DNA from: Pavona decussata
Taxonomy: Eukaryota
DNA length: 64,000 nucleotides
Direction: 5' to 3'
NCBI GenBank assembly: GCA_977016875.1
Contig: CDRNST010000018.1
Location: 1,550,001-1,614,000, forward strand
Under the pieces are notes generated by a model. It was given only the letters and a program-made list of their open reading frames with translations. It was not told where the DNA came from and did no database searches. This document shows, piece after piece, positions 35,981 to 58,478 of the stretch. The position numbers and the translations under genes are program-made. Position 1 is the first letter of the stretch. Every line of letters begins with the position of its first letter.

Positions 35981-38536
35981 ATGGCTTTGCAGCACACACC
36001 ACTTGACTTATCCGTGAGTGGAAGAAAGGATCTGGGTGAAGGAAAAGTGACTTACTCATTTAACAAAGACCAGCATGCCAGATTGTTGTTGAGTAACCTT
36101 GCCAAGATGCAGGCAACCGAAGGAGGAATGCTCACTGATGTGGTTGTAAGCACCAAATCGAACGGCCAAGAACCGTTCCATTCCATACTACTCGCAGCTT
36201 GCAGCCCGGTTTTCAAACAGAGTCTTACAGGGAAGCACTTTGATTGCACCTCGGGAGTCATTTCACTGGGCGACATGACTCCAGATCAGCTTAAGGCCTT
36301 CCGCGATTTCTTCTACAAGTCTGAGATTCCTTTAGATGAAGGAATAGTACATGGCCTCCAACGGGTCGCCAGCAGGTACCGCATCGATTCCCTCGCGCAG
36401 TTGTGTGGGCAACGCAGAGATCAGCGGATGTCCGTTTTGTCGAAGCATCACGAAGATGTGTTGTCCCAACTACACGACATGTTCCAAAAATCCGAATTGG
36501 CCACTACGTTTTTGGAAGATAAGGAGTGCGGCGTTCAGTTTACAGTACACGGGCCAATAATCGCAGCAGCTTCTCCGGTGTTGAAAGACATCTTGTCCAA
36601 CGAGTTGTTCGCTCAAGCGGGGACCAAATATCGCCTGAAAGAAATCACATCCAACACGCTGGGGGATCTCATAGAGTACATATATACGGGGGAAGTCACA
36701 ATGGAAGGAGAAAACGTAGTCGATTTGCTAAATGCAGCATGCTGTTACGAAATCCCGTCGCTTGCCGAAGCCTGCTGTGATTGGCTTACGTTGGGGATGA
36801 ATTCGTATAATGCAGTCGGCATTTGGTGGGTCACGCGGGAGACGGATTGTAAATACACCAGCGATCTTCAAAAGGAAGCCAAGAACTTTATTGTGGCCAA
36901 TTTCATCAGCGTCTGCCAAGAAGACGAATTCCTTGAGCTCTTGTGTGAAGACCTGAAAGAAATCATACAGGACGACAATCTTTGCGTAGATGGTGAGGAA
37001 GATGTGTTCTCTGCCGTTGCTACTTGGGTGGAAGCGGACGAAGAAGGCCGCTCATCCTACCTTTGTGATCTCCTGAAATGCGTTCGGCTAGAGAATACAA
37101 GTCTGGAATTTTTGCGTGAAGTGGAAGAAGATCGTCTTGTGAAAAATTCCGTGGGATGCTTGCAAGCTGTTCACGATGCTCGTGCAAAGTTAGCATCTCA
37201 AGAACCCATTGAACGGAGTGCTTTTGATGGAGTTGAGGCAACCGACGTCCAACGTGACAGCATCCCAAGAGTTGAACCATGGCGAGGCGATGAAGAAGAT
37301 GTCAAGAAAATGCTCCTGCAACAGTTCTTGGATTCTCAAGCAGAAATGCCCACCCTGAGGTCAACACATGATAGCGACGATGGTTTGGAGGAATTGACCA
37401 AGCAGACTCCACCTCGGGGCATCAGGAAGAACGGAAACCCTGATATGAGGTTGAGAGACAACAGGCGATCGTCGGGCCTCAATAAGAAGGATGGTTCCCC
37501 AGATATGCGTTTTAGAGTCAACAAAGGAAACAGTCAGAAAGGAGTCGTTGCTACGCGAAAAGAAGGTCCATTGAAAAGAGACGGCACCCCAGATATGCGT
37601 TTTAGAGTCAACAAAGATGCCTTTGGACGCTCATCTCAAGAAAACTCAGCTAAAGCTAAGAGTCCGAACGGAGTCGTTGCTACGCAAGGAGAAGGTCCAT
37701 TGAAAAAAGACGGCACCCCAGATATGCGTTTTAAAGTGAATAAAGGAGCCTTTACGGGGTCATCTTCCCAGAAGAGTGCATCCCAGGTAGAAAGTGTTCC
37801 TCTCAAAAGAGATGGCACGCCAGACATGCGCTTCAGAGTCAACAAAACAGCAGTTGTGAAGTCTCCTTCTCCTGTCGGTACTTCAGGACCTGTGAAACAA
37901 GATGGTACGCCGGACATGCGTTTTGCTGTTAACAAACCATCCCGCAGATCAGCTTCTCCACAAACAAGCAGCTCAATGGCTCAGTCATCCGCTTATGCAG
38001 GCCCTCTGAAGAGGGATGGAACGCCAGACATGAGGTATGCTGCAAACAAGTCACCCCATGCCAGCCCAATGTCCTCAGGGTATTCATCTAGTGGCTCCCC
38101 ATCATCTCTTAGTGGAAGTGTTTCTCGTCCAGGTTCTTATGGCCCACTGAAGAACGATGGTACACCAGACATGAGATATTCTGCAAACAAGTCGGCCAAT
38201 GGCAGCTCTTCCTCATCTGGCAGTTCAAATTACAGCTCCGGATCGTCGTCTTCTCGAAGTAGCTACAGCACTTCAACCTACAGCTCCAGTTCGTCTTCCA
38301 GTGGAAGTAGCTATGGCGGATCAACTTCCTGTGGCCCAGTTAAGCGTGATGGCACTCCTGACATGAGGTATGCTGCAAACAAGTCGGTCTATGGTGGTCC
38401 TTCCTCGTATGGCAGTTCAAGCTACAGCGCTAGATCGTCTTCTTCTGGAAGAAGCTATGGAGGTTCGAGTTCTTGTGGTCCACTTAAGAGCAACGGCACT
38501 CCCGACATGAGATTTGCATCCAATAGACGCAAGTAA
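35981..38536 (+). CDS. BTB-BTB-BACK protein with 10 DGTPDMR motifs and Ser/Gly/Tyr-rich tail (851 aa), putative Cullin-3 adaptor
   Basis: Uninterrupted ORF. BTB1 (DVVV..FHSILLAACSPVF..FFY), BTB2 (FTVHGPIIAAASPVL..LIEYIYTGEV..NVVDLLNAA..L..AC), BACK (FIVANF..EFLEL..LKEIIQDDNL..EEDVFSAVATWV..LLKCVRL); no Kelch repeats. Confidence 0.92.
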   Translation: MALQHTPLDLSVSGRKDLGEGKVTYSFNKDQHARLLLSNLAKMQATEGGMLTDVVVSTKSNGQEPFHSILLAACSPVFKQSLTGKHFDCTSGVISLGDMTPDQLKAFRDFFYKSEIPLDEGIVHGLQRVASRYRIDSLAQLCGQRRDQRMSVLSKHHEDVLSQLHDMFQKSELATTFLEDKECGVQFTVHGPIIAAASPVLKDILSNELFAQAGTKYRLKEITSNTLGDLIEYIYTGEVTMEGENVVDLLNAACCYEIPSLAEACCDWLTLGMNSYNAVGIWWVTRETDCKYTSDLQKEAKNFIVANFISVCQEDEFLELLCEDLKEIIQDDNLCVDGEEDVFSAVATWVEADEEGRSSYLCDLLKCVRLENTSLEFLREVEEDRLVKNSVGCLQAVHDARAKLASQEPIERSAFDGVEATDVQRDSIPRVEPWRGDEEDVKKMLLQQFLDSQAEMPTLRSTHDSDDGLEELTKQTPPRGIRKNGNPDMRLRDNRRSSGLNKKDGSPDMRFRVNKGNSQKGVVATRKEGPLKRDGTPDMRFRVNKDAFGRSSQENSAKAKSPNGVVATQGEGPLKKDGTPDMRFKVNKGAFTGSSSQKSASQVESVPLKRDGTPDMRFRVNKTAVVKSPSPVGTSGPVKQDGTPDMRFAVNKPSRRSASPQTSSSMAQSSAYAGPLKRDGTPDMRYAANKSPHASPMSSGYSSSGSPSSLSGSVSRPGSYGPLKNDGTPDMRYSANKSANGSSSSSGSSNYSSGSSSSRSSYSTSTYSSSSSSSGSSYGGSTSCGPVKRDGTPDMRYAANKSVYGGPSSYGSSSYSARSSSSGRSYGGSSSCGPLKSNGTPDMRFASNRRK

Positions 38537-39431
38537 ACAAGGAATCGCCGGTGCGTTTCCTGACATGTTGGTCAAGAGAAGACAAACGGGTTTCCATTGT
38601 TCCCATTTTCTGATATACGTAATTTCATGTTTTTCATGTTTTCTTGTTGGCATTGTAACCTGAGAAACATTTGTTTCCCCAGAGGTACAATTGCGCTATT
38701 TCATAATGCACGTTAGTATTTTGTATACTGGGAACAGTAGGTACAATGAATATACTCCTATAAAGTCCAAGAACACAAGTCTTGTCATAACTGTTAGGTT
38801 TTAGTTTTTCAACTTCAACGGCCACTTGATATATGCTGTGGTCTTAAGGTTTTTGTAAGCGATGCAAATGTTGTTTTTTATACTGTATCTCAGAATAGGT
38901 ATTAATCGGTGATTTTGCGGACAACTTAAAATAGTTACAAAATTGAAAAATGTTGTTCTTCCCTAGCTACATATTGTATTACGTTATCGTTCAAGCGCAT
39001 GCTTCGGTCCACTTCGTGTTAAGTAACGACCTAGTGGCATGTGAAAAAAAAGTTAAAAAGGTTGTATAAGATTTGGTAGCAAGTAATAGAACCATCGTTG
39101 TTGTTTGAAGCTTGTCTGTTCATTGTGTAGCCGCAGTAACAAGTTGAGTCATTAACAAGGTATCCAGGTATCACACGATGCCATGGTCGGAGGCTTATCT
39201 CCTTTGCATTCTTTCTCATCCACTGTTTTTTTCAGGTCGGTTTCTGTTGTCTTTACGCAGACCACTTCAATTTTTTGCACAACTTTCCCACACGTAGACG
39301 AATACTGCAAGTTAAAAAAGAAGAAGGGAAGATTTCAGTAAAGCGTTGAGCTTTTGTAGCAGTAGTTCCCTTTCCAAGCGAGTGTCAGATGCAAACAGAA
39401 AACTTCCGGGAAGAGGGAGAAAAAAATACAT

Positions 39432-39584
39432 NNNNNNNNNNNNNNNNNNNNNNNNNNNNNNNNNNNNNNNNNNNNNNNNNNNNNNNNNNNNNNNNNNNNN
39501 NNNNNNNNNNNNNNNNNNNNNNNNNNNNNNNNNNNNNNNNNNNNNNNNNNNNNNNNNNNNNNNNNNNNNNNNNNNNNNNNNNNN
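39432..39584. other. Assembly gap (153 N); other gaps at 43423-43566 (144 N) and 60935-61105 (171 N)
   Basis: N runs. Confidence 1.
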
Positions 39585-40788
39585 TTTCGTTCGACTGCTA
39601 GGCAGACATTTTAGGGTTTGGTTAGAGCGGAATGGGTATCGGCTTACAGCGACAACCTCGAACTGGGAAAGAAACCTCATAAAAACATAGCCATCCACGA
39701 CACATACGGTTGCCGTCTGTGGTTCAAAAACGTCTGTGCTTAACTTTAGCATCCCATTTACGCGGTAGTCGCGACTATCCGCAACTCCTATCCGACTTAA
39801 TCTTCAGTATGATCTTTACTTTGAAGCGACAGGAAGTTTAAGCTGTATGTGTATTTAGCTAGTGAAACACATGCATGTCACATAAAACTTCGTTACTACT
39901 TTTAACGTTTAAACTGGTATTTATATTAAAAGACGGGTTTTCTCAAGCATATAACAGCAACAACGAACGATAACGATAGGCTCATAAAACCTGGTCTCGG
40001 CCGTTCTCATTTGAGGATTTTCGTTTCTAAATGGCAACGAAGTTAGCTGTTAAATGGTAGCGCCATTCGCCTATGCCCACTAGCATCCCACCGCTGTAGA
40101 GGCCTTAGCGAGTTCACAGGGATTTCGCTGTGAACATTGGCTTATGCAAGGCCATTCAGCCTGTAAGAGCCCATCGATGAACGGCACCAGGTCTTCAACC
40201 TGTGGAGAGCGCTTGACCTCCGCACGCACGAGCAGCTTCCTGTACTTAGTGGCGCTGCCGCCTGTCCAGTTTTTGCCTCTACAACGTCTTTCCGATCATC
40301 TCCGGTGGCTTCTTCACTGAGACCACTATCTCTACTAGATGGAATGAAAGACAAAGTTGCCTCGCTGAATACTAGTAATGCCAATACAAGGTTAAATTTT
40401 GGTTCGATTATTGAGAAGAACTAAAAGCATGTTATGAGAGCAACTACTTTATACTTTCTTTGAAAAAAGCTGTTGATAGAACGCCGCATTTTGATAGATT
40501 TTTCTAACTCAGATCAGAGAAGACAGAAGACTCGAGAAATGGCGGAAAAACACATGAAAACAAGGCAGTTTTCTTTGGAAAGCCGCTGCCTGGTTAGCAT
40601 GAATTTTTGCTTAATTTTTCTCATCTGTCATTCAGGGCACTACCTCATTCGCGTTAACATTCAACATAACATCATGTTGCGTTAACATTTCTTTTTTACT
40701 TATTTAACTGTTTGTGAATTTGTCAACAATGACTGAGGCAAGTGCCTCGGTTTGCCTCGTACTGGCTACGGCCCTGGAGTCAATAGGA

Positions 40789-40881
40789 CGTCAAATTGTG
40801 AAAAGCACAGTGAAGAAAATAACTGGTATCAGCGAGACCTAGGGACAAGTTAGGTTGAATTTTTATGCAGTCGGAAGAGTT
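40789..40881 (+). pseudogene. 3'-terminal remnant of the GPCR gene (second copy at ~62679-62771)
   Basis: cgtcaaattgtgaaaagcacagtgaagaaaataactggtatcagcgagacctag..gtcggaagagtt matches the last codons (RQIVKSTVKKI.GI.E.*) and 3' flank of the GPCR at 43328-43420. Confidence 0.8.
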
Positions 40882-40983
40882 AAAAAAGAAAGGTTAAAGA
40901 AGAGAGAGAAATTTTACAAACTACCATTTAATAAAGTGTCAGTTTGGAAAGCCAGGAAATACATTTGCTGATTAAAGGAAGCC

Positions 40984-41132
40984 GGTTGTTGGTTCTCGTC
41001 CCTGCTCCGTTCGTCTTTTTCCGGGTACTCCGGTTTTCCTCCCTCCACAAAAACCAACATTTCCAAATTCCAATTCGACCTGGAAACAGTGGACGAATAG
41101 CCACTCTGTGGATGTGCCTCTGAAATTCCCAT

Positions 41133-41163
<31 letters not shown>

Positions 41164-41166
41164 TTT
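40984..41166 (+). mobile_element. 5'-truncated SINE with (ATTT)n tail (copy at ~62874-63048)
   Basis: Conserved SINE core ccgggtactccggttttcctccc and ATTT tail; the homologous site at ~43615-43630 is empty. Confidence 0.8.
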
Positions 41167-41200
41167 GAAAACAACGAATTTATTTGCGTAATACATAGTA

Positions 41201-42451: not shown

Positions 42452-43381
42452 ATGGCTAGCCAGTTTTGCGATGAAAAGTTGCAGGCACTGGTACAACTCG
42501 TTCACCAGCATTCAACATTCATGTTCACTCTTTGTGTTTTAAACTTTATCTTCTCGCTCGTGGCGACTCTTGGAAATTTTCTTGTTATTCGTGCCATTTG
42601 GAAAGCTCCATCGATGCCAGCTAATTTGAAGAAGACTCTCTTAAGCCTCGCGTTTTCAGATCTTGCTGTTGGACTGTTTTCACAGCTAATGCACGGTGTC
42701 ATAATGGCGGTGATGTGGAATATGGCGGCGAATCAAAATTATAACTTCGGCTTCCTTTGTCCAACAGTTTTAACAATTTGTTATTTACCTATGTTTTTTC
42801 TCGCTTGTGCATCGTTCCTTAATATAACCGTCATTGCTGTCGATAGACTTCTCGCCGTTTCTCTTCATCTGCGATATCATGAACTTGTCACTTCAAGACG
42901 GGTCGTTGTCGCTTTGGTGTCTTTATGGCTGACAAGTGGTATTGCTTCCTCTATAATCATTTCATTTACAAAGCACTATGGCATGGTAGCAGCGGCCGTA
43001 GGATGGATTGGATTTCTCTTGACAACTGTGGCATATATTCGTATTTTCAAAGTTGTGAGATATCACCAGAACCAAATACAAAGTCAACTTCAACAGGCGA
43101 ATCATCAAGAAATGGAACTACACCGAGAGAAGAAGTCCGCCTTTAATGCTCTGTTTATTTATGTTGTTTTTGTTCTCTGTTATCTTCCATATTTTTGCGT
43201 TTTAATGTTTCATGAAAATAACGGTCCTCGAAGTTCTCTTTTGGCACCATATGTCGCTACACATTTCTTGATTCTTCTCAATTCTTCGTTGAATCCCCTC
43301 GTGTATTGTTGGCGATATCGAGAAATTCGTCAAATTGTGAAAAGCACAGTAAAGAAAATATTGGGAATCACCGAGGCGTAG
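42452..43381 (+). CDS. Intronless class A (rhodopsin-like) GPCR, adenosine/melanocortin-receptor-like, 309 aa
   Basis: Seven hydrophobic segments with GN (TM1), SLAFSDL (TM2), IAVDRL (TM3), CYLPY (TM6), NSSLNPLVY (TM7) and a basic helix 8. Confidence 0.93.
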   Translation: MASQFCDEKLQALVQLVHQHSTFMFTLCVLNFIFSLVATLGNFLVIRAIWKAPSMPANLKKTLLSLAFSDLAVGLFSQLMHGVIMAVMWNMAANQNYNFGFLCPTVLTICYLPMFFLACASFLNITVIAVDRLLAVSLHLRYHELVTSRRVVVALVSLWLTSGIASSIIISFTKHYGMVAAAVGWIGFLLTTVAYIRIFKVVRYHQNQIQSQLQQANHQEMELHREKKSAFNALFIYVVFVLCYLPYFCVLMFHENNGPRSSLLAPYVATHFLILLNSSLNPLVYCWRYREIRQIVKSTVKKILGITEA

Positions 43382-45899
43382 GGGCAAGTAAGGTTGGATT
43401 TTTATGCGGTCGGAAGAGTTTTNNNNNNNNNNNNNNNNNNNNNNNNNNNNNNNNNNNNNNNNNNNNNNNNNNNNNNNNNNNNNNNNNNNNNNNNNNNNNN
43501 NNNNNNNNNNNNNNNNNNNNNNNNNNNNNNNNNNNNNNNNNNNNNNNNNNNNNNNNNNNNNNNNNNATAAAGTGTCAGTTTGGAAAGCCAGGAAATACAT
43601 TTGCTGATTAAAGGAAGCCGGTTAAAAACAATGAATTTATTTACGGAATACATAGTTCTGATGCAAGAGATTCTAGTCAGTTGACTCTGGCTGGACTGAA
43701 GGACAATGGGGTTAATATCTCATTAGTCCGTTCAACGGAAGTTTATATAAAGCCTACATACCAATGTGATCCTTTGTCATAGCAATTTTTTGGCTGCAGT
43801 TAGCAAAGGAAGTGATTTTGGGAGCGATTTTGTGCATAAACTGTACACTACGTTATCAAATGTTATATAAAATGTCGTCAGTTTTTATTGTGTTTGACAT
43901 GTATCCTGTACAACCTGTAAACTTAGCCATTCCTCGAGAGTGACTGCTTAATACAGGTTCGACTGTATAGTAATGTTTAGGGCGGTCACTGCAAATCCCC
44001 CAAACTGGGAATGAAGGGCTATTAGAACACAAAATTTCCGGTATTAGAAATAATTATAGGATATTAAAGATAAACCATTTCTCAAAAAGTGATATCGGAA
44101 GTGTATTCCATTTATTCATATTCAATTGAACGCACCCTTGGCGTTTGTTCAATGTTTGAATTCAAATTTCAGTGCATATAATTAGTAAGGCCAGTTATTA
44201 CTATAGAAATGGAATGAATTTTTTTTAGGACTATTGTCCTAATAGTTCCCTGGCTTGTTATCCCTGTGAAGGAAATATTGTTCAGTTTGGAGAGGTGAAA
44301 GATTTGACCTCGGGTGAATTGGAACCCACAACCTCTAGATTAGCCCTCTTGACGTGAAACGCAAATGAAGCGCAATCAAAAGCGAGCACACTTGTGAACT
44401 TCGACGTGGACAAAGGAAGTGAGGAACGACGGGAAGAGCACTTTCAACGTTGCCCGCGCTCCTCGTGATATTTCATTCTCTCCAGTTTCCGCGAAAGCGG
44501 TCTTATTTTTCGCTCTCCAGTCTCCACTCGATCGTGAAAGTGGCCTCCGTGGAGAAAAGAGATGGCAGTCGTCGAGCAAGTGAAGAATTATTGCAATCGT
44601 AAAAAGTGTTGTCTAAAGAATATTTCCTTTATTCTTATTGCAGAATACAGTCAAATAAACGCAACCCCTGCCTTTAAACTCTCCATTAAGAGAAGTGAGT
44701 TTCTATTTTTGCCCTTTCTTTTATTGTTGCATTTTCTTTCAGCTTCCAATTGTAAACTGAGAGGTAGTAAACGCATCGAGCCATAGTTTTGTTCTTCTTC
44801 GAAGCTGAAGGTGAGACCAAGGTATAAATTAAAAAGTATAATTAAAGATGGACAATCTTGCTTAATTTTGTCACCGCGAGTCAAATGGACAAATGCCATA
44901 CAATTTTTTTGCGAATTAGCATTAGCTGTATTATTAATTTCTGTAGCTGCGGGGCTTCAAAGTGGATGTTTTTCCAAGGTATAGGTTTTTTAGCAGGTGA
45001 ACCGAACAAATTTTACTAATGTCACGAAACAGCGTCAATTTTATACAAAACTATTTTCGTTTTCAAGTAAACAAAGCGTTTAGGCTCAGCTGGAAACTGT
45101 TAAAAATTTATTTATGTGAGCTGACAGGTGATTATCTTGGGCTGAGAAATGAACAGACATACAACCGGCGTCAGTGGTCAGTGATCATTTTGTCATTATT
45201 CACAAACGCTTCATGACGGAGAGTCTCTAATGTAGGCTTTAAGTTATCAGTTGGTTTTATTAGGCGGGCGCGTTACTTTCAAATTAAAGCCGCGCAATTA
45301 AAGACGCCTATAATTTTGTATGATCTTTTCAAGCGGTAAAGATAAATTAGTGAAGCTAACTTGTTGCTAACCCGGGGCGTTTGCCATTAAGCCAAAATGT
45401 TTCGGTTCAGCCGGTTGAATTGCAAATAGTACGCGCGGATATGAGAGGGAAAGTTCCTGTAACAAATGGACGACCTTCTGAGGTACTTCACTTTTTCCAT
45501 TCCAAGCGGTCAGAACTGAAATTTTCGTCCCATTTGCACAAATTTTTCAGCTCCACTTTCTCGTCTTCTTGTACCACCACGTAAGTTTTTTTTATCTACC
45601 AATGTGTTTGCAAGTTGGGAACGAATAAAAAAATGCCTTTCCAGTCACGGAAAGTTTCCGGCGGTATCTTCCAACCGAAAATTTTGGTTAAATAGAAAGC
45701 GCCCCTGTTGTTGCATAATTGTATATTAAACAATTATTATTCTACGAGTGTGCGTTGCATATGACAAGATAGATGCACAACTAGGCGCGCAGCGCCAAGT
45801 TGGCTATAATTAATTATTAAATTCTCAGCCTCGGATAATGCATTTCTAGTCATTGGTTCACTAAATCCCGGTTGTCAGCTCTAATATCATGGGTGACAA

Positions 45900-48521
45900 A
45901 TTACTCCTGGGAGAGCGGGAGGGAATAACAAACTGTCGAGGGATCACACGCGGCTGAAGCGACGAGCTAACTAAGAACGAGGTCAAAGTGTCGCGAACAT
46001 GAGACGATGGCGCAACGCGATCTCCGTCCAGTAATTCCAGGGTGATGATGTCATGGCCAAAACGGTGAAGGACTGAGCTTGGAAAAGGCTTGTGGAAATA
46101 CTGACCGTTGAAGAAGCCACCGGCTCCCGTGCTGCATGCATCGGTAGAGAGAGACAAAGGATCGTTGCACCATGGGACAGTTTTGATGATAGTTACACCG
46201 TTGTAAAATGGGAGAAAATAGCACCACCATCGCAGATCATTTTTGTTGTCAGGCGAGAGTGGACAGACAGACGATAATTTATGGACGCGTAACGTGTACA
46301 AGAGGGTAGACATGAAAACGCGGGCGGGACGAACACAAGCAGTGACGTAGGACATCACTCCAAGAAGAGACTGCAGATTGGTTCGAGAGACGTTGTCAAC
46401 GGGCAAGAGCGACGAGCAGCGATCGAAAAGCTCCTGTACACGTTCGGGAGAAACGGAGACAGTCATGTTAGCAGTGTCGACCAAGACTCCAAGGAAAACC
46501 ATAGAATTGGCTGGAGGGGACGCTTTTTCAGGCGTGGTATCCAGGTCTAACTCTTCCAGTAGGGAACCCAAAGTCTGGAGAAGCCTCCGCTGACTTATCA
46601 GGAATTTCAGCGCCACCAAAATCATCAATGTAGTTTGTGCAGTGGAAGCCTAGATCTCGGTACATGAAAGTGATGGCAGTAGTGGAGCGTTGGCGCATCA
46701 TGGCGGAGGAGCGAAGGCCAAAAGGGGGGGCGATGTCGAAGTAAAAGGCGTCGCGGCGACGGAAACCAAGGAGATGATAATAACGTGGGTCAACACGTAA
46801 TTGTCTGTAAGCTCTGCTGAGGTCCATCTTAAAGAGATGACAATGACGGCCTTTCAAACGGATTATGTCCAGAAGAGCATCTACCCCGGGTAGACGGGCG
46901 AGACCGTTCGAGAACGGATTGGACGAGAAAGGACCGCAAGTCGCACCGAGTTCGCACTCGCGGGTGAGGTAAGAGTCGATAACATCTGGTCTGGATAATG
47001 CGGACCGGTGATTTCTGGCTGAGGATATAGGAGTTTCGCCGATGGCATAGCCAGCGGGCCAGCCAAATTCGAGGAAATCGCAGAGGTGCATGTCGGGGTA
47101 GGTTGCTAAGCGACTCCGCCATGCGGGGATGTTGAGATTCGAAGGAACGGGAAGACGCAACGTAAAGGCGTTTGGACCAGAGGCGCACTGAAGCTGGGCG
47201 TGGAGAGCAATGAGATGTGGGAATAGAGAAGATTTCAATGGCAATCGCTGGACAGGAGACGAGGGGCCGACGCCAGGCGGGTTGGAAGACGGAGAGGGTT
47301 GTGGATGAAGTAAGGTCTGGCTCGAGGATTCATCGGGAGAAGAGGCTAGTCAAACTTTGGAAACTGTGTCGCTACGGCGAAGAGGAACCGGAAACTTCCG
47401 CTTTGGACAGGTGAACGCTTGATGGTCAGAGCGCTTGCACACTACACAGATGTGGGACTTAGGGCAATCTAGTTTGGCACAGTTGTCATACCAGCTCCAG
47501 GCGTCGCAGATTTGGTGGCGTGCGATGGCGGATTGAGATTCCGTAGGGGGGTTTAGTGGTTTTGAACCAGGTTTGGCAGCTTTGGGTGGAGAGTTGGCGA
47601 GAAGACAGGTGGGGAGAAAAAATGACTGCTTAAGAGGCTCGAAGCTGTCTCCCCAGTTGACTAAGCCCAACTCAATCGAGCGACTTTATAATGGTAAGAC
47701 CGTACCGCTGACCACTGGTAGGACGACGCGAGTACCATGAGCTCATGGAAATGCTCGATAATCGTTTCTCTATTTGGCTTATCTGCGCGCTGCTGAACGA
47801 TAACGGAATAACCCGCACAGAACTCGGCAAAAGAAAGGTCAACATTTAGCTTTGGCTCACCTGGTGCGTATATGTGTGGCCATTGTTGTGGGTTTGTGAT
47901 TTTCTGCGGCGCTTTCACATCACCCAGGGACTTGTTATTTGTGGCTGTTTCAGAGGTTTGAGTTGCGCCGCCAATCCTGCTTTCGAGTTGGCCAACTGGA
48001 GGCGCAATTCAAGTTTTCTTATCTCGCGATCTTGATTTTCCTTAAGGAGTTGAAGGTGAGTGATTTCATCGTCGCGGCTTGGGGGCGTTCCGGCTTTAAT
48101 GTGCTCTGGCAAACCCGGTGGAAAGTTGAAATTTGGGGTATCAGGCGTAGATCCGGAAGGACGCGTCTTAGGAATAGCCCCTTTCTTGTCCTTTTGTTCC
48201 TTCTTCTCCTGCTTGTCGTTAATTTTGTCAATTTTAGGCTCGGTGGTAAAGAGCTGTGACGTTGTTGGGTCTGCTGGGTCGAGCGATGGTAGATCCCAAG
48301 CGTAATCGGGACTCAAATGACGAAAACTGCTGCGTGTGACACGAGGGCTGTTTGGCATAATGGCTTACCGGCGAAGAGCGTCGAAACTTTGATGGGAGAA
48401 ATGGGAAACGAAGCACAATAACAAACTGTCGAGGGATCACACGCGGATGAAGCGACGAGCTAACTAAGCACGAGGTCAAAGAGACGCGAACATGAGGCGA
48501 TGGCGCAACGCGATCCCCGTC
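45900..48521 (-). mobile_element. Degenerate, internally deleted DIRS/Ngaro-type retrotransposon (gag, RT, partial RNase H; no tyrosine recombinase)
   Basis: gag-like ORFs 48358-47350 ending in CDAWSWYDNCAKLDCPKSHICVVCKRSDHQAFTCP zinc finger; RT motifs KMDLSRAYRQL, PFGLRSS, NYIDDF; RNase H LSTDAC..GAGG..ITLELL; 105-bp direct repeats at 45924-46028 and 48417-48521; several frameshifts. Confidence 0.88.
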
Positions 48522-49015
48522 AATAATTAACCTAAATTTCGGCGCGAAATTTCAGCGCTAATTTATAATTTCACATGTGAAATTACAAAATTGCTATGGC
48601 AACATCTCAGTGCCAAGATGGCGTCCAGGTTTAAAGATGTTACGGATGAAAGAAGTTACAGAAAACCTAAATACGCGAAAGATCACAATTAACTGGGTGA
48701 GAGTTTCTGAGAACAGGCCGATGAAAATGGCCTTGAGAAAAACCCTGAGACGGTTCGTCCTGAGCAGTTGGATAAAGTACTCGAGCGGTTTTTTGCCTGC
48801 GTGTGTAAACAAGACGCAACCGACCACGTAATTTGTCAAAACGCGCGCGAAATTATGTCCTAATTTCACTCGTTACCATTTGATTACTAAACACATAGAT
48901 TCCATTTTGCCGGGCGTCTGTACTCTGATAATGCACAGATGACGTCAAAACGTGGTGAGAACAAAGAAGTACGCTACGAGCCGCAGGCGAGTAGCGTGAC
49001 TGATGTTCTCACAAG

Positions 49016-49712
49016 CAACGCTGACTCTTGCTCACCCTCTGAAGAGGGATGGAACGCCAGACATGCGGTATGCTGCAAAGAAGTATTCTGCTCTCCCACT
49101 TCTCATTCTAGCAGCCCTGGAGCAGCCTCAGTGTCACAGATGTCCTCTTCTAGAACTCCAAGTGGCCCTTTAAAGAGAGATGGGACGCCAGACATGAGGT
49201 ATGCTGTAAAAAAGTCACCCCATGCCAGCCCAGTATTCTCAGGGTATTCATCTAGTGGCTCTATGTCATCTCTTAGTGGAAGTGTTTCTCGTCCAGGTTC
49301 TTATGGCCCACTATAAAGAACGACGGTACACCAGACATGAGGTATTCTGCAAACAAACCGGCCAATGGCAGTTCTTCGTCATCTAGCAGTTCACATTACA
49401 GCTCCGGATCGTCGTCTTCTCGAAGTAGCTACAGCAGTTCCACCAACAGCTCCAGTTCGTCTTCTAGTGGAAGTAGCTATGGCGGATCAACTTCCTGTGG
49501 CCCAGTTAAGCGTGATGGTACTCCTGACATGAGGTATGCTGCAAACAAGTCGGTATATGGTGGTCCTTCCTCGTATGGCAGTTCAAGCTAGACCAAGCTA
49601 CAGCGCTGGATCGTCTTCTTCTGGAAGAAGCTATGGAGGGTCGAGTTCTTGTGGTCCACTTAAGAGCGATGGCACTCCCCACATGAGATTTGCAGCCAAC
49701 AGACGCAAGTAA
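49016..49712 (+). pseudogene. 5'-truncated, frameshifted third copy of the BTB-DGTPDMR gene (tail only, 5 motifs)
   Basis: Matches the 3' end and 3' flank of genes A and C; a 1-bp insertion gives TAA at 49314-49316 and a 10-bp insertion (gaccaagcta) gives TAG at 49589-49591; ends FAANRRK*. Confidence 0.88.
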
Positions 49713-51538
49713 ATAAGGAACCGCCGGTGCGTTTCCTCACGTGTTGGTCAAGAGAAGACAAATGCGTTTTCATTGTTCCCATTTTCTGATATACTTAATG
49801 TCATTTTTTGAATGTTTTCTTGTTGGTATTGTAACCTGAGAAGCATTTGTTTTCCCAGAGGTAAAATTGCTCTATTTCACAACGCACGTTTGTATTTTGT
49901 ATACCGAGAACAGTAGGTACAATGAATATACTCCTATAAAGTCCAAGAACACGAGTCTTGTCATAACTGTTAGGTTTTAGTTTTTCAACTTCAACGGCCA
50001 CTTTATATATGCTGTGGTCTTAAGGTTTTTGTAAGCGAATCGGATGAAATGTTTTTGTATACTGTATTTCAGAATAGGTATTAATCGTTGCTTGCTTTAG
50101 CTATCAATCGGTTGCGAATTATATTTGAGTTTTATGGTAGCACTGTTTAAGATTATTCGAATGTTGTTACGTCAGGTCGACCCCCAGAATGATGTATTGT
50201 TACCATTGTAGCAATTTCATTATCCACTGACGTCTTTGTGGGCTCGGTCAGTTTTTAAAGAATATGGTTCTTGTTTCAGTGGCTGGTCGATGTTAGACTG
50301 GTCTAAGAACAAATCGCAAACTACGTATAAAAACACGTTAAGAGGCATCGCATGATCACAGTTTATTTAGTAAAGTACCTTTACTGTTATTGAACAAGGA
50401 AGCGAGATAAAAATTGCGCGCAATTGTAAATGGTAATAATTTCGCGTTAGAGTTACAGAATGTGGTATTCCTCAATGCGTGGATTTGTTTTCTTTAGTCT
50501 GATGTGGACTAATCCAGGAACAATTGTCAATTTGCGAAGTTTTATTTATTTAGCTCACACTTTTTATTTCATTCCTTTCAAGTGGTAGAAGCAGGCACTG
50601 GTAACTTTACCATCATTCTGGTGATTTTGCGGACAACTTAAAATAGTTACGAAATTGAAAAATGTTGTTCTTCCCTAGCTACAAATTGCATTACGTTATC
50701 GTTCAAGCGCATGTTGCAGTCCACTTCGGGTTAAGTAACGACCTAGTGGCATGTGAAAAAAAAGTTAAAAAGGTTGTATAAGATTTGGTAGCAAGTAATA
50801 GAACCATCGTTGTTGTTTCAAGCTTGTCTGTTCATTGTGAAGCCGCAGTAACAAGTTGAGTCATTAACAAGGTATCCAGGTATCACACGATGCCATGGTC
50901 GGAGGCTTATCTCCTTTGCATTCTTTCTCATCCACTGTTTTTTTCAGGTCGGATTCCGTTGTCTTTACACAGACCACTTCAATTTTTTGCACACCTTTCC
51001 CACACGTAGACGAACACTGCAAGTTAAAAAAGAAGAAGGGAAGATTTTAGTGTAGCGTTTGTAGCAGTAGTTCCCTTTCCAAGCGAGTGCCAGAAGCAAA
51101 CAAAAAACTTCCGGCAAGAGGGAACAAAAAATACATTTTCCCCTCCTCCATTTTTTCTTTGTCTTTCTTATTTATTATTTCTTTTCTTATTTATTTATTT
51201 TTGTTTTGGGCTCCTCCCCGTAAGCTTTCGTTCGACTGCTAGGCAGATTTTATGGGGTTTGGTGAGAGCGGAATGGGTATCGACTTTCAGCGACAACCTT
51301 GAATGGGAAAAAAAACCTCATAAAAACATGATTTTAACAAAAAGTATCGACGTCCGGGGGTGTAGCCATCCACGACACATACGGTCAAGACCTTGACTAC
51401 CCTAAGGAAGCCATCCCGCGAAAGAAAAGATGGCACATAGGTTTCAAAAAAAGGCTGTTCTTTTTTCGAACTTTATTAATGATGGTTGTTGACAGCAGGT
51501 TAACCCCGCGGGGTCTGGATTACGAGCAAAGTACTTAC

Positions 51539-52205: not shown

Positions 52206-54531
52206 CTACATAAGAAAAGCCCGTTATGTATAATATACAAGCAGCAGAAAGAGGGGTATTCCTTCATTTTAGTGGATATCCGTTCAGAAGGCCTTGGACA
52301 CCTCAGAAATTTGGATGTAGTTGCAAAGAAAATATCAAGTTTTTTCAGGAAAATGTCAGCTCAAAACTTCGTAACGCTAGAAAATTAACCAAGGGTTGTG
52401 TATGTGTTTGTGTGTGTGGGGGGGGGGGGGGGGGGGGGGAGGGAGTTCCCCTTTTTTTCTCTCACTTTTTCTCGCTCCCCCTCCAGGGAGGTTGATATTG
52501 GAGGACGCGCTACGCAGCGACTATGCCCTATTGTTTTTTACCTTTCTCTACACGTATTATTAGAAAGCTAAAAACCACCCCGGCGTACTAAGGCTGTGGA
52601 TTATTGTCTCTGGCCTTATATGGACTGGAGCTAACGTTTTTACTGGCCTGCACCGCAGACGGACTATAACCCCCGGTTTTTATTAGTTCTCGCAAGTTCT
52701 CACTTTGTTCAGCCGGTTCCGTAACAGGGGCTTTTGGGGAAGTCGGCTCCGCTGCTGAGGGAAAGGTGCCCTGTTACCTTGAACCGGGATCTTTTTTTAC
52801 ATCAAGTGGACCAGATCTTCTTCAAGGAACATAGTGTTTATTGCAGATCTTGACTCATTCTGTTACAGGCAAAACTCCAAGAGCTTTTACTGCAGAAAAT
52901 GTTTTTATATAAGGGCCGTAACCAAAGTTTTTCGACAACTCAATTTCAGTTGCGTAAGCTTAGCAAATGGAGGAAGTTCTAAAGGTATTACTTTTCGCGC
53001 CATTACAAACTGAAGCTCATTTCTTATTCGAAAGAACAGCAGGGGTTCAACACCTATGTGATTTACTTGACAGTTACAAAGGCTGCGATATTTCCTAAAC
53101 TGAGTGAGATCCGCTTTTACTGAAAAATGTCCAGTAACATTTAAACTGTGCGCCAGACCAGATCATTAGTCAGTGTTCCTTTCAATCAGAATTCATTTGA
53201 TTTCCTTCTCTCGATTTTCTAGAATGTGCAGGTATTGTTGCTACCTTTTCACCAAAAAAGATCAAAACTCGTCACGTTTCCCCTTGATTATCCCTAATAA
53301 ATACCAGGTGACCCCAATTTTGGATTTTTTTCTTTGTCTGTTTCTCGCGCACTGGCGCACTTTCCGAGAATTCGATAGCTTGGGGCGCGTACTCCATTCT
53401 CGGAATCATAACACTCGTACACGGTTGTTTTTCAACGTTGGAGGTTCGTTGTCGAAACTGTCAGGTAAGGATAGGTTGTTTTGATGTTTCTTTTAGGCAT
53501 GGGAATGGTTGCTTTTCAGTCTAATCGATCGAACAATTGAGTAGTGCGATTGCTGTCCGCAATAAATGCACCAGTTTGGCGATACAGTATATCAAAGGAT
53601 TTAAAGCTCGGCCTTTCATATTCAAATCAATTGCAATATCAACAGCTTGACGCAGATAAGAAAACAGCGTCGCAATAATAGGGAATCTAAACCCGGCAAA
53701 CTTGAAATGGCTCTGAAATGACCGATGAACACATTCTGTAAAAGCCAGATCGGATTTCATATCCACGTGCGAACGAAGGAACGTAGATGCGGGGAGAAGT
53801 GATTTTTCGTGATTTGTACCAGTTTGGCTCTAGATATTGTGGAAAAGTTTCCTAGGAGAGCGACGATGTGGCCATTTATTTTAAAGGAAACTTGATTTTC
53901 TGACAGTGTAGGTGTTGATGATATGTTCTCACGCCCGGGGTTTTTCTTCTTCCACTTTCTGCAATAGAAATATTATCCAGTGTTACCGCAAAGTTCATGT
54001 TTTCCTGCTCATTCGGTCGGCTAAATGCAGCTGGACTGAACTAACGAGGAACTTTTTTAACGATTGCCGAAATGTTTGTAAGAGCTTTGGTTTAGTTATA
54101 AATCTACAGTATAAAGAAAATCCGTCGCATTACTTTGAAAGAAGAGGATTATATTAAACGATTTTAGCTAGGTTAGGTACCGAAGAGATGTTTTAGCGGC
54201 GAGCTAACGAATAGAAGGCTCGTTTGTTTAAAATGTTTTTTTATTGGAAAAAAAACAAACGAGAATTACAAGATGTGACTTGCTTCTGTTAATATTGTTT
54301 TCTCTGATTTTTATTTTGTGAGATGAAAGGACGTGCAAAATTTAATTCCGCTTTCACTTTCTTTGAAACAGAAACTTCAGCAACCCGGAAGAATTCATTA
54401 ATATTGATTGATTTCTAACAATGGTCGTATTTCTCCGCCTTGGAATAAGATACCTTCCACCGATCATGACATGAACCACCATCGAGTTTAATATACCCCA
54501 CTGTTTTTTAAACTTAGAATCGATCAACTCG

Positions 54532-55216
54532 TACTCAAGAAAATTAAGGCATGTTACTCAAAAAATCAAGGGGGTGGTCAATCTTCTGAAGATTTAGCTG
54601 TAACGTCGTAAGACTTTGGCAGCATAATATGCTTACAAATGTCAACATATTGACATACACAACTTATGCAAATTGGGTCACTTGACCTGTTGCGGCCGAA
54701 ACATTTATGAAAACATTTGAGAAAAAATGGCACCACTTTTTATTGCCTCCTGGAGGCTGCCAGTAGTTTTAAAACTTTGCCACTGTCAGGCACTTCATTT
54801 CTGTGCTCGGGTTTTTTGAATATTCCTTTAATTTTGAAAATAAACGGCATTTTTTACTAGTACCCAGTCCCTCCAAAGTAAAATTGGCCGTTTATTTTCA
54901 AAATTGAGGGAATATTTAAAAAGGCCCGGGCACAGGAATAAAGTGACTAACAGTGGTAACGTTTTAAAACTACAGCCAACCCCTGGGAGGCATTAAAAAG
55001 TGGTGCCATTTTTGCTCAAAAGTTTTCTTCAATTTTGCATCCGCGAAAGGTCACGTGACCTAATTTGCATAAGTTCTTTATGTCAATATGTTAACATTTG
55101 TAAGCATATTATGCTGCCAAAGTCTTACGACGTTACAGCTAAATCTTCAGAAGATAGACCACCCCCTTGCTTTTTGAGTAAATAACTTAAGACCCATGCC
55201 TTAATTTTCTTGAGTA
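54532..55216. mobile_element. 685-bp foldback element with TA ends (Tc1/mariner-type MITE) in the 5' intron of BTB gene C
   Basis: TACTCAAGAAAATTAAGGCATG ... CATGCCTTAATTTTCTTGAGTA; inverted similarity extends ~300 bp; absent from the homologous site in unit A (~35615). Confidence 0.88.
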
Positions 55217-55577
55217 GGGTAATGTACGCTGTCAGTTTTGACACATTTCAGTTGTAATTTTTCTCGGGATATGAACGAAATCCTCTTTTCCGTCCGTGAA
55301 CTACCACTTGCAGCAGCCCAAATATGTATATTGTCATCCAAGACGGATATAAGAAACCTAGTATTATGATTCAGCTTTTTGTTACATTACAAAGTGGTTA
55401 CTCTGATTTAAAGCTGAATTAGTCCAGATGGGTATTTGTTAGTGAACAAGAAAGCCAGTGGCACGAAAAGCTGTTAAACCAGAAACCGGGTATGGTAATG
55501 ACTTTCAACTTTCGATATGACGGAAGCAGACTGATTAACATGTCTGTTTTCAACTTTTTGATTTTGTCTTCAGTAAA

Positions 55578-58478
55578 ATGGCTTTGCAGCACACACCAAT
55601 TGACTTACCCGTGAGTGGAAGAAAGGATCTGGGTGAAGGAAAAGTGATTTACTCATTTAACAAAGACCAGCATGCCAGATTGTTGTTGAGTAACCTTGCC
55701 AAGATGCAGGCAACCGAAGGAGGAACGCTCACTGATGTGGTTGTAAGCACCAAATCGAACGACCAAGAACCGTTCCATTCCATACTGCTCGCAGCTCGCA
55801 GCTCGGTTTTCAAGCAGAGTCTTACAGGGAAGCACTTTGATTGCACCTCGGGAGTCATTTCAGTGGGCGACATGACTCCAGATCAGCTTAAGGCCTTCCG
55901 CGATTTCTTCTACAAGTCTGAGATTCCTTTAGACGAAGGAATAGTAGATGATCATGACCTCCGACGGTTCGCCAGCAGGTACCGCATCGACTCCCTCGCA
56001 CAGCTGTGTGGGCAACGCAGAGATCAACGGATGTCCGTTTTGTCGAAGCATCACGAAGATGTGTTGTCTCAACTACACGACATGTTCCAAAAATCCGAGT
56101 TGGCCACTACATTGTTGGAAGATAAGGAGGGCGGCGCTCAGTTTACAGTACACGGGCCAATAATCGCAGCAGCTTCTCCGGTGTTGAAAGACATCTTGTC
56201 CAATGACTTGTTCGCTCAAGCGGGGACCAAATATCGCCTGAAAGAGGTCACATCCAACGCGCTGGGGGATCTCATAGAGTACATATACACAGGTGAAGTC
56301 ACACTGGAAGCAGAAAACGTGGTTGATTTGTTAAATGCAGCATGCTGTTATGAAATCCCGTCGCTTGCCGGAGCCTGCTGTGATTGGCTAACCTGGAGGA
56401 TGACTTCGTATAATGCAGTCGGCATTTGGTTGGTCACGCGTAAGACGGATAGTGAATACACCAGCGATCTTCAAAAGGAAGCCAAGAACTTTATTGTGGC
56501 CAATTTCATCAGCGTCTGCCATGAAGATGAATTCCTCGAGCTCAAGTGTGAAGACCTGAAAGAAATTATACAGGACTACAATCTTTGCGTAGACGGTGGG
56601 GAAGATGTGTTCTCTGCCGTTGCTACTTGGGTTGAAGAGGACGAAGAAGGCCGCTCATCCTACTTTTGTGATCTCCTGAAATGCGTTCGGCTAGAGAATA
56701 CAAGTCTGGAATTTTTGCGTAAAGTGGAAGGAGATCGTCTTGTGAAAAATTGCGTGGGATGCTTGCAAGCTGTTCACGATGCTCGTGCAAAGTTAGCATC
56801 TCAAGAACCCATTGAACGGAGTGCTTTTGATGGAGTTGAGGCAACCGACGTCCAACGTGACAGCATCCCAAGAGTTGAACCATGGCGAGGCGATCACAAA
56901 GAAATCGAAAGAAAGATGCTGCAAGAGTTGCTAGATTTTCAAGCAGAAATGCCCACTTTGAGGCTAACACATGACAGTGACGATGGTGTGAAGGATTTGA
57001 CCAAGCAGACCCCACCTTGGGGCATCAGTAAGAACGAAAACCCTGATTTGAGGCTGAGAGAAAACAGGCGATCGTTGGGCCTCAATAAGAAGGATGGTTC
57101 CCCAGATATGCGCTTTAGAGTCAACAAACATACCCTGCAGAAAGGAGTCGTTGCTACGCGAAAAGAAGGTCCATTGAAAAGAGACGGCACCCCAGATATG
57201 CGTTTTAGAGTCAACAGAGATACCAGTCAGAAAGGAGTCGTTGCTGCGCGAAAAGAAGGTCCATTGAAAAGAGACGGCACCCCAGATATGCGCTTTAGAG
57301 TCAACAAAGATACCAGGCAGAAAGGAGTCGTTGCTACGCGAAAAGAAGGTCCATTTAAAGCAGACGGCACCCCAGATATGCGTTTTAAAGTGAACAAAGA
57401 AGCCTTTAGGCGGTCATCTTCCCAAAAGAGTGCATCCCAGGTAGAAAGTGTTCCTCTCAAAAGAGATGGCACGCCAGACATGCGCTTCAGAGTCAACAAA
57501 ACAACAGCTGCGAAGTCTCCTTCTCCTGTCAGTGCTCCAGGGCCTGTGAAACAAGATGGTACACCGGACATGCGTTTTGCTGTTAACAAACCATCCTGCA
57601 GATCAGCTTCTCCACAAAGAAGCAGCTCAGTGGCTCAGTCATCCGCTTATGCAGGCCCTGTGAAGAGGGATGGAACGCCAGACATGAGGTATGCTGTAAA
57701 CAAGTCACCTAATGCCAGCCCAATGTCCTCAGGGTATTCATCTAGTGGCTCTCTTTTATCTCTAAGTGGAAGTGTTTCCCGTTCAGGTTCTTATGGCCCA
57801 CTGAAGAGAGACGGTACACCAGACATGAGGTATTCTGCAAACAAGTCGGCCAATGGCAGTTCTTCCTCATCTGGCAGTTCAAATTACAGCTCCGGATCGT
57901 CGTTTTCTCGAAGTAGCTACAGCAGTTCAACCTACAGCTCCAATTCGCCTTCCAGTGGAAGTAGCTATGGGGTATCAACTTTCTGTGGCCCACTTAAGCG
58001 TGATGGCACTCCTGACATGAGGTATGCTGCAAACAGGTCGGTCTATGGTGGTCCTTCCTCGTATGGCAGTTCAAGCTACAGCGCTGGATCGTCTTTTTCT
58101 GGAATTAGCTATGGAGGGGCGAGTTCTTGTGGTCCACTTAAGAGCGATGGAACTCCCGACATGAGGTATGCTGCAAACAGGTCGTTCTATGGTGGTCCTT
58201 CCTCGTATGGCGATTCAAGCTACAGCGCTGGATCGTCTTTTTCTGGAATTAGCTATGGAGGGTCGAGTTCTTGTGGTCCACTTAAGCGTGATGGTACTCC
58301 TGACATGAGGTATGCTGCAAACAGGTCGGTCTATGGTGGTCCTCCCTCGTATGGCAGTTCAAGCTACAGCGCTGGATCGTCGTTTTCTGCAAGTAGCTAT
58401 GGTGGGTCGAGTTCTTGTGGTCCACTTAAGAAGGATGGCACTCCCGACATGAGATTTGCAGCCAACAGACGCAAGTAA
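55578..58478 (+). CDS. BTB-BTB-BACK protein with 13 DGTPDMR motifs and Ser/Gly/Tyr-rich tail (966 aa), paralog of 35981-38536
   Basis: Uninterrupted ORF collinear with gene A; extra 90-nt units (57138, 57228, 57318) and 144-nt units (57984, 58128, 58272, partial 58416). Confidence 0.92.
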   Translation: MALQHTPIDLPVSGRKDLGEGKVIYSFNKDQHARLLLSNLAKMQATEGGTLTDVVVSTKSNDQEPFHSILLAARSSVFKQSLTGKHFDCTSGVISVGDMTPDQLKAFRDFFYKSEIPLDEGIVDDHDLRRFASRYRIDSLAQLCGQRRDQRMSVLSKHHEDVLSQLHDMFQKSELATTLLEDKEGGAQFTVHGPIIAAASPVLKDILSNDLFAQAGTKYRLKEVTSNALGDLIEYIYTGEVTLEAENVVDLLNAACCYEIPSLAGACCDWLTWRMTSYNAVGIWLVTRKTDSEYTSDLQKEAKNFIVANFISVCHEDEFLELKCEDLKEIIQDYNLCVDGGEDVFSAVATWVEEDEEGRSSYFCDLLKCVRLENTSLEFLRKVEGDRLVKNCVGCLQAVHDARAKLASQEPIERSAFDGVEATDVQRDSIPRVEPWRGDHKEIERKMLQELLDFQAEMPTLRLTHDSDDGVKDLTKQTPPWGISKNENPDLRLRENRRSLGLNKKDGSPDMRFRVNKHTLQKGVVATRKEGPLKRDGTPDMRFRVNRDTSQKGVVAARKEGPLKRDGTPDMRFRVNKDTRQKGVVATRKEGPFKADGTPDMRFKVNKEAFRRSSSQKSASQVESVPLKRDGTPDMRFRVNKTTAAKSPSPVSAPGPVKQDGTPDMRFAVNKPSCRSASPQRSSSVAQSSAYAGPVKRDGTPDMRYAVNKSPNASPMSSGYSSSGSLLSLSGSVSRSGSYGPLKRDGTPDMRYSANKSANGSSSSSGSSNYSSGSSFSRSSYSSSTYSSNSPSSGSSYGVSTFCGPLKRDGTPDMRYAANRSVYGGPSSYGSSSYSAGSSFSGISYGGASSCGPLKSDGTPDMRYAANRSFYGGPSSYGDSSYSAGSSFSGISYGGSSSCGPLKRDGTPDMRYAANRSVYGGPPSYGSSSYSAGSSFSASSYGGSSSCGPLKKDGTPDMRFAANRRK

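Follow-up and report, generated by a model that had tools for sequence, protein, structure and literature searches.

Proteins in which a BACK domain accompanies a BTB domain are generally regarded as dimeric CUL3 adaptors that carry a folded substrate receptor. In BTBD8 (also called APache), AP-2 is bound by a long disordered C-terminal region located behind two BTB domains and a BACK domain. Here, we analyzed a gene cluster of the coral Pavona decussata, located in a 64,000-nucleotide stretch of contig CDRNST010000018.1 (positions 1,550,001 to 1,614,000; referred to below as the window, with all coordinates counted from its first letter). The products of this cluster join a BTB-BTB-BACK scaffold to a disordered tail in which a 17-residue mini-module is repeated 10-13 times. 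An initial annotation of this DNA, made from the letters alone, had proposed that the array of these copies stands in place of a Kelch propeller. Our analysis shows that the array did not originate as a peculiarity of this BTB family but is a portable module that many other enzymes, bacteria and phages also possess. The motif is unusually widespread and seems not to have been described before.

The two genes that the initial annotation had called intact are indeed open on the forward strand (Table 1). In each protein, Pfam recognizes two stretches of PF00651 (BTB; expectation value (E) 1.8e-32 for gene 1 and 1.6e-29 for gene 2) and one of PF07707 (BACK; E 1e-22 and 3e-20, respectively). The last 450-500 residues of both proteins, which follow residue 382, gave no significant Pfam family, the only match being to DUF4553 at E 0.03-0.09, below the cut-off. 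The protein of gene 1 was also modelled with AlphaFold2 (AF2), using a family alignment of 43 sequences. The predicted local distance difference test score (pLDDT) exceeded 90 for most of residues 11-410, which comprise a beta-hairpin, the first BTB (BTB1), a helical linker, the second BTB (BTB2) and BACK, with E12-27 and H29-143 as the secondary structure of the N-terminal part. The tail was predicted to be disordered, with a pLDDT mostly below 50 outside the motifs and of 55-75 at the motifs. Neither Pfam, for both genes, nor AF2, for gene 1, pointed to a Kelch propeller or another folded C-terminal receptor (Kelch, PHR, MATH); the C-terminus is instead a disordered motif array.

The consensus of the 17-residue unit in the tails reads psi-K-x-D-G-T-P-D-M-R-[FY]-x-x-N-[KR]. 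The numbers of copies given in the initial annotation, 10 and 13, are correct if one non-canonical core per gene is counted: gene 1 has nine canonical cores and one NGNPDMR, while gene 2 has 12 canonical cores and a degenerate NENPDLR. Successive cores in the two genes are separated by 20-64 residues. When the DGTPDMR core was back-translated, 22 occurrences were found in the window, all on the forward strand, as compared with 0.00 expected from 100 shuffles. When scored one by one with the 30-position motif profile described below, the copies in the window reached E values between 4e-13 and 3e-6. The tails of all four intact paralogues end in NRRK or NKR just past the last copy; in gene 1, the protein stops immediately past the final copy.

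The cluster on the contig comprises four intact tandem paralogues and one remnant, in a genome of 602 Mb with a G+C content of 38-40%. Two of the intact members lie outside the window, the third (1012 residues) 17 kb downstream, with 89% N-terminal identity, and the fourth (870 residues) 30 kb upstream on the other strand, with 47% N-terminal identity. Even at this distance, the fourth paralogue still carries GPLKKNGTPDMR[YF]xxNK copies. No variation at K, G, P, D, M, R and N was found over the 41 copies of the four paralogues. Apart from Met, which has a single codon, each of these residues is encoded by 2-5 synonymous codons (Arg, for instance, by CGT, CGC, CGA, AGG and AGA). As synonymous codons vary at the invariant residues, the conservation is one of the protein and cannot be put down to a recent duplication of the DNA. 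In agreement with this, the ratio of nonsynonymous to synonymous substitution rates (dN/dS) among the three close paralogues was 0.19-0.31 in the motifs, 0.93-1.28 in the spacers and 0.35-0.48 in the folded N-terminus. The suggestion that selection holds the motif while the spacers drift is therefore supported by both codon usage and substitution rates.

The closest named relatives of the proteins are found in the stony corals Porites lobata, Oculina patagonica, Stylophora pistillata and Desmophyllum pertusum, with the same architecture in Porites, Oculina and Stylophora. A search with the tail only returned about 240 proteins, most of them coral BTB-BTB-BACK proteins. The other matches included amphioxus proteins that have no BTB, a Paulinella protein, an RBR E3 ligase bearing GPTKKDGTLDMRY copies, and a BTB-BTB protein of Lingula with the same tail. 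In a direct BLASTP comparison, the Lingula and coral N-termini were collinear through the hairpin and both BTBs, with 29% identity and an E value of 4e-22. The combination of BTB-BTB with the array is, therefore, not confined to cnidarians.

To describe the motif itself, a profile of 30 positions was built from 41 units of coral, amphioxus, Lingula, Paulinella and protist proteins and compared with 1.84 billion cluster representatives. This yielded 1631 matches at E<=1e-3, of which 753 were at E<=1e-10. A lack of conservation in other species, which the initial annotation had named among the grounds for refutation, is thus clearly not the case, as the motif is conserved far beyond corals. The taxa include hemichordates (Ptychodera flava, Saccoglossus kowalevskii), a brachiopod (Lingula), amphioxus (Branchiostoma species), bdelloid rotifers (Rotaria and Adineta), Tritrichomonas musculus, where a carrier has a transmembrane part, and Paulinella micropora. 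The core is not identical in all of them, as Thr is replaced by Ser or Ala, and Pro by Leu in many protists. Spacers rich in Ser, Gly and Tyr accompany the motif also in amphioxus, Paulinella and protist RBR proteins. The array sits either at the C-terminus, where the protein typically ends with ..NRR, ..NRRK or ..NK a few residues past the last copy, or at the extreme N-terminus.

The partner domains were determined by a Pfam scan of 84 profile-matched proteins. Protein kinases were the most frequent (16), followed by GIY-YIG (10), IBR/RBR (9), HMG box (4), WWE (2) and Exo_endo_phos (2). MMR_HSR1 was found in two proteins, and PARP, PBZ, AIG1, URGCP-type GTPase, RHD3-type GTPase and GYF_2 in one each. 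Death, TIR, NACHT and CARD domains were absent from the 25 families listed. In the sampled kinases, the arrays are N-terminal, and the two kinase domains that were checked against solved structures are TKL-like, the nearest being Raf, TAK1, CTR1 and IRAK4. One apparent partner, a 'Rad2 nuclease / Exonuclease 1' of Desmophyllum pertusum, was rejected as a likely chimeric gene model, as it joins XPG_N to the initial 40 or so residues of the BTB family and these to a motif tail.

The motif found no match in Pfam, NCBIfam, the PDB or the open literature that was searched. In the ESM Atlas, the tail had no usable match and the N-terminus only generic BTB-BACK clusters, including a cnidarian one of about 855 residues. 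In keeping with the initial annotation, the architecture belongs to no named family in these curated collections or the literature. Classical model organisms were not seen among the matches to the motif, and it may for this reason have gone unnoticed.

The arrays commonly open with a double unit, in which ..PDMR[LF][KR]xNR.. is followed, 6-8 residues later, by N-x-DG[ST]PDMR.., the two being about 20 residues apart (37415-37510 and 57018-57110 in the window). This opening is kept from corals to Lingula and is also found in the divergent 870-residue paralogue. One coral protein of 1497 residues consists almost wholly of the alternating double-unit form.

Beyond eukaryotes, we found the motif in bacteria and phages. 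Two of the best profile matches had signal peptides, and one of these was encoded on a gene-dense contig. In reference bacterial genomes, 239 stretches encode relatives. These are mostly from Bacteroidota (Mucilaginibacter, Hymenobacter, Elizabethkingia, Puia, Flavipsychrobacter and many Chitinophagaceae), and others are from Janthinobacterium and one Bdellovibrionaceae genome. The distribution is patchy, with a match in 5 of 151 sampled genomes of Bacteroidota. A typical bacterial carrier has 60-200 residues, beginning with a signal peptide, followed by a Thr/Lys/Ala-rich linker and at least two C-terminal copies of [HG][LPT]KKDGTPDMRYKENK. The copies are usually 23-24 residues apart, forming a HLKKDGTPDMRYKENK-type tandem at the C-terminus. 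Two bacterial carriers are on record, both under the name 'hypothetical protein'. Nine bacterial carriers gave only compositional noise and no NCBIfam or Pfam model, and no single gene family recurred as a neighbor of the motif-encoding gene at more than 10 of 80 bacterial loci. In IMG/VR, 22 viral loci encode one copy of the motif. The viral copy is found in very long tape-measure-like proteins, just before hydrophobic repeats, one of which proteins matches tape-measure PHROGs, and also in a protein with a Neck1/tail-completion match. All of the viral contexts are very basic and disordered. The module is portable and ancient, occurring in single copies or arrays at the N- or C-terminus of many unrelated animal and protist enzymes and in small bacterial exported and phage tail proteins.

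Some exported proteins of Bdellovibrionaceae type, with 530-600 residues, show a further variation. Here, canonical copies are followed by a related GRYV[DE]PxxGRPLNNDG[TS][YF]DMR unit and then by a Tyr/Trp-rich C-terminal domain, at which the 2-cysteine-adaptor model of Pfam matches weakly (E 0.12).

According to the models, the unit may have a small intrinsic structure. At each coral motif, AF2 predicted a beta-bridge in which the hydrophobic residue before Lys pairs with Pro. A bacterial tandem pair of 43 residues, modelled with its own alignment, reached a mean pLDDT of 78.6 and was predicted to form the same beta-bridge loop, followed by a short helical turn. Among solved structures, the motif profile found 0 matches in the PDB at E<=10, and Foldseek with the model of the 43-residue tandem found nothing significant.

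The initial annotation had also described the two genes as single-coding-exon genes. This holds for the coding sequence, which is contained in one exon; the genes are not, however, intronless, as each has an upstream non-coding exon with a GTAAG donor and a matching acceptor. The non-coding exon lies in a conserved block found 1.6 kb before gene 1 and 2.1 kb before gene 2, and a polypyrimidine-AG acceptor is located 4 nucleotides ahead of each ATG. In one contig of a putative RNA run, the match starts exactly at the coding exon, with the distant upstream block joined on; the same run contains no contigs across the 1.5 kb intron. The RNA-like contig is about 98% identical to the genome and differs from it in a few bases at the junction. 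At positions 55574-55577, the contig reads ..CTGTCAG-C-AATGG.., while the genome predicts ..CTGTCAG-TAAA-ATGG... and the divergent 870-residue paralogue has ..cag|CATG... Given the identity of about 98% and the altered acceptor junction, this contig may represent an allele or a close paralogue. In our reading, the contig stems from a spliced transcript of the group, and it provides modest evidence of expression.

Table 1 Features of the BTB-BTB-BACK gene cluster in the window, with the evidence for each.
Feature	Position	Strand	Content and evidence
Gene 1, non-coding first exon, 3' end	34326..34354	+	GTAAGT donor at 34355; end of RNA-like contig matches with one mismatch, at the junction
Gene 1, coding exon	35981..38536	+	851 residues, BTB-BTB-BACK and tail with 10 motif copies; open reading frame, translation, Pfam, AF2
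Gene 1, N-terminal beta-hairpin and first BTB	36014..36409	+	About residues 12-143; Pfam, AF2, collinear with Lingula homologue
Gene 1, second BTB	36476..36784	+	Residues 166-268; best Pfam stretch; loop aligned to phi-x-E is L-F-A
Gene 1, BACK	36857..37123	+	Residues 293-381; Pfam PF07707, E 9.9e-23
Gene 1, motif array	37415..38533	+	10 copies of GPLKxDGTPDMR[FY]xxN[KR]; spacers basic, later Ser/Gly/Tyr-rich
Truncated family remnant	49035..49706	+	5'-truncated and frameshifted, tail only, 4 intact cores; tblastn pieces in three frames, blastn, profile matches
Gene 2, non-coding first exon, 3' end	53436..53464	+	GTAAGG donor next; same block as upstream of gene 1
Gene 2, coding exon	55578..58478	+	966 residues, BTB-BTB-BACK and tail with 13 motif copies; open reading frame, translation, Pfam
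Gene 2, second BTB and BACK	56079..56723	+	Residues 168-271 and 295-382; Pfam; PDB sequence matches to KLHL3, KEAP1, KLHL11
Gene 2, motif array	57018..58475	+	12 canonical copies and 1 degenerate copy

The interpretation that we consider best is that the genes are functional and lineage-expanded and that their tail is a portable, putatively multivalent binding module; we assign this a probability of about 0.55. In the mechanism that this suggests, each copy would act as an autonomous binding unit, and the array would provide avidity for a repetitive or surface-like ligand, and the scaffold would thereby be targeted, at high avidity, to the ligand of the motif. The BTB-BTB-BACK part would supply oligomerisation and possibly recruit CUL3, so that proteins present at the ligand would be ubiquitinated. 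A more ambitious version, in which the 17-residue unit is an undescribed, autonomous mini-module of bacteria, phages and eukaryotes alike with one universal ligand (for instance nucleic acid or an anionic membrane or envelope surface), attached again and again as an address label to kinases, ubiquitin ligases, nucleases, GTPases and phage tail proteins, and the coral protein is a BTB (possibly CUL3) ligase scaffold with an array of labels in place of the Kelch propeller, is one that we offer tentatively and regard as unlikely to hold as a whole.

Several points that weigh against the above should be considered. In this genome, the profile search found the motif only in this gene cluster, although this is a lower bound. 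The evidence for expression is a single short contig of a presumed RNA run, and that contig may be an allele or a close paralogue. No one ligand fits all of the contexts, as the exported bacterial carriers fit poorly with nucleic acid, while HMG, nuclease and PBZ partners fit poorly with a membrane. Finally, CUL3 recruitment is doubtful, as the Glu of the phi-x-E triplet is gone in the BTB that is linked to BACK. When the 43 family members were aligned, this column never contained Glu, the residues being Ala in 22, Ser in 16, Cys in 2 and Leu in 1, with gaps in 2, and the phi position was Leu in only 23 of the 43.

As for the ligand, the near-identical unit of 14-17 residues spans bacterial exported, phage virion and eukaryotic cytosolic proteins. 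This points to a ligand that is universal or else to a property inherent in the unit. The ligand is thus probably a universal molecule rather than a lineage-specific protein, judging from the distribution of the sequences. None of the candidates stands out. Nucleic acid or chromatin, favored by the HMG, PBZ, PARP, WWE and nuclease partners and by the basic phage contexts, is only marginally ahead. An anionic membrane or envelope surface, favored by the exported bacterial carriers, the hydrophobic neighborhood in tape-measure proteins and the transmembrane Tritrichomonas carrier, is nearly as likely, and something else, such as an ion or self-association, is as likely as the membrane. A conserved protein seems a slightly less likely ligand.

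The alternative that survives best is that the coral protein is a canonical CUL3 adaptor that dimerises, engages CUL3 through BTB2-BACK and uses the array to pick substrates or a polymer for ubiquitination. In comparison with solved structures, BTB2-BACK is closest to KLHL3 (5e-24, a CUL3 complex entry), KEAP1 (3e-20), KLHL11 (4e-19), KBTBD2 and gigaxonin, the E values ranging from 5e-24 to 1e-16, and BACK sits directly after BTB2 and aligns with the BACK of KLHL3 and KLHL11. The assignment of this part to the KLHL/KBTBD type in the initial annotation was hence justified. The resemblance of BTB2-BACK to CUL3 adaptors of solved structure makes CUL3 recruitment reasonable to propose, and an adaptor role is plausible from homology; the RBR ubiquitin ligases among the motif carriers would also fit a link to the ubiquitin system. 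The phi-x-E triplet of the alpha3-beta4 loop, however, which is M-S-E in KLHL3, L-R-E in KEAP1 and F-S-E in KLHL11, aligns with L-F-A in genes 1-3, and the E85A change in KLHL3 reportedly weakens CUL3 binding. In 23 of the 43 members, a Glu is found two residues downstream of the phi-x-E column, but the genes of the window are without it. In BTB1, the equivalent column is Asp or Glu in 32 of the 43. The coral N-terminus is, in short, of KLHL type and lacks two classical adaptor features, namely the Glu of phi-x-E and a folded receptor domain. Whether the BTB-BTB-BACK part binds CUL3 stands at about even odds, and the full canonical adaptor falls slightly short of that. The cullin genes of this genome are multi-exon.

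The same loss of Glu, together with the predicted disorder of the tail, would suit a scaffold that is independent of CUL3. Here, the tandem BTBs would serve only for oligomerisation or would pair with each other as a pseudo-dimer within one chain, and the ligand would be clustered or coated without ubiquitination. Condensates may be driven by the Ser/Gly/Tyr-rich spacers of the distal half of the tail, which resemble those that accompany the motif in amphioxus, Paulinella and protist RBR proteins. Yet the spacers evolve in a near-neutral manner, with dN/dS around 1, and the conserved BACK is otherwise typical of CUL3 adaptors; we thus consider such a scaffold possible, although on the unlikely side.

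It is improbable that the unit is a modification or processing site, such as a T-P phospho-site, a Lys or Arg modification site or a protease site, with the array acting as a multi-site switch or degron. The invariance of Lys, Thr-Pro, Arg and Asn would fit this, as would the psi-K-x-D start, which by eye resembles a weak SUMO consensus; nonetheless, Thr is changed to Ser or Ala and Pro to Leu in many protists, Asp is changed to Asn in one paralogue, and the motif is found in bacterial exported and phage virion proteins, where there are no eukaryotic kinases or SUMO enzymes. An equally improbable alternative is a cell-autonomous immune sensor, in which the motif would bind a component of the bacterial envelope and the eukaryotic fusions with kinases, E3 ligases, GTPases and nucleases would detect or coat intracellular bacteria, since the exported bacterial carriers, the phage tail proteins that cross the envelope and the TKL kinases, RBR ligases, AIG1, URGCP- and RHD3-type GTPases and PARP among the eukaryotic partners are offset by the lack of Death, TIR, NACHT and CARD domains noted above and by HMG-box and PBZ partners that point to chromatin.

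A number of known motifs were also compared with the unit by eye and rejected. In the tankyrase-binding motif, the order is wrong, while APIM and the PIP box would leave an extra residue before the last basic position. The calcium loops of EF-hand, dockerin and thrombospondin type-3 were dismissed, as the unit has only two acidic ligands and no Pfam match. A SUMO consensus fails with the change of Asp to Asn and with a psi position that is not hydrophobic in protists, and ligase motif I (KxDGxR) fails with the wrong Arg spacing and the absence of the fold. A bipartite nuclear localisation signal cannot apply to bacteria. A neuropeptide precursor was rejected for the lack of a signal peptide and for the cytosolic BTB at the N-terminus.

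The remaining features of the locus should be mentioned briefly. The interval 35981-58478, which contains the coding exons of both genes, also spans unrelated features, a G-protein-coupled receptor (GPCR) gene and a retroelement. The pseudogene listed in the initial annotation is present, with tail pieces in three frames, but as a 5'-truncated remnant that retains only the tail. The remnant matches genes 1 and 2 by blastn at 89-91% identity, contains a fragment of an open reading frame at 48939-49316 and shows 3'-flank homology up to about position 51100. The two assembly gaps, at 39432-39584 and 43423-43566, fall outside all three family copies, the former in the 3' flank of gene 1, some 900 nucleotides past its stop. 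As the gaps are intergenic with respect to the family, the reading frames are unaffected.

Between the family members, at 42452-43381 on the forward strand, lies an intact single-exon open reading frame for a rhodopsin-family GPCR of 309 residues (Pfam 7tm_1, E 1.6e-22), with the second gap beginning 42 nucleotides past its stop. A retroelement remnant with overlapping open reading frames and a weak RVT_1 match (E 3e-4) occupies 45861-48358 on the reverse strand, directly upstream of the truncated family remnant; by eye, it contains a YIDD-like motif and a CCHC-like zinc knuckle. It may mark the event that truncated the family remnant. Elsewhere in the genome, at least about 85 further KLHL-type BTB-BACK matches were found on many contigs, most of them open frames of 550-680 residues that lack stops, are apparently intronless and often form tandem clusters. 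The KLHL-like genes have thus undergone a large expansion.

If the preferred interpretation is correct, the coral receptor would be a multivalent array of short motifs in place of a folded receptor, which would represent a different mode of target selection. The motif is attached to at least a dozen different effector domains, and finding its ligand would annotate more than 1000 protein clusters at once. It might also show that phage infection, the bacterial envelope and eukaryotic signalling have one mode of binding in common.

Compared with known systems, the coral protein resembles the KLHL/KBTBD proteins in BTB2 and BACK. It differs from them in the additional N-terminal BTB and beta-hairpin, in having a disordered motif array and no Kelch propeller, and in the absent Glu of phi-x-E. 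With BTBD8/APache, it shares the order of its parts, namely two BTBs, BACK and a long non-globular tail that binds partners, although this is an architectural analogy and not a demonstrated homology, and the coral motif is not known to resemble anything in the BTBD8 tail. AT-hooks, the GW repeats of GW182, the DPF/NPF arrays of endocytic adaptors and the heptads of the Pol II C-terminal domain likewise combine short conserved units with free spacers, a presumed avidity and a varying copy number. The coral unit, however, is about 17 residues long, is far more conserved across kingdoms, has a predicted local structure of its own and matches none of those with which it was compared by eye. The bacterial and phage carriers present the same motif nearly residue for residue and end right after the last copy, as in coral, but they have one or two copies instead of 10-13, are exported or part of the virion, and contain no BTB.

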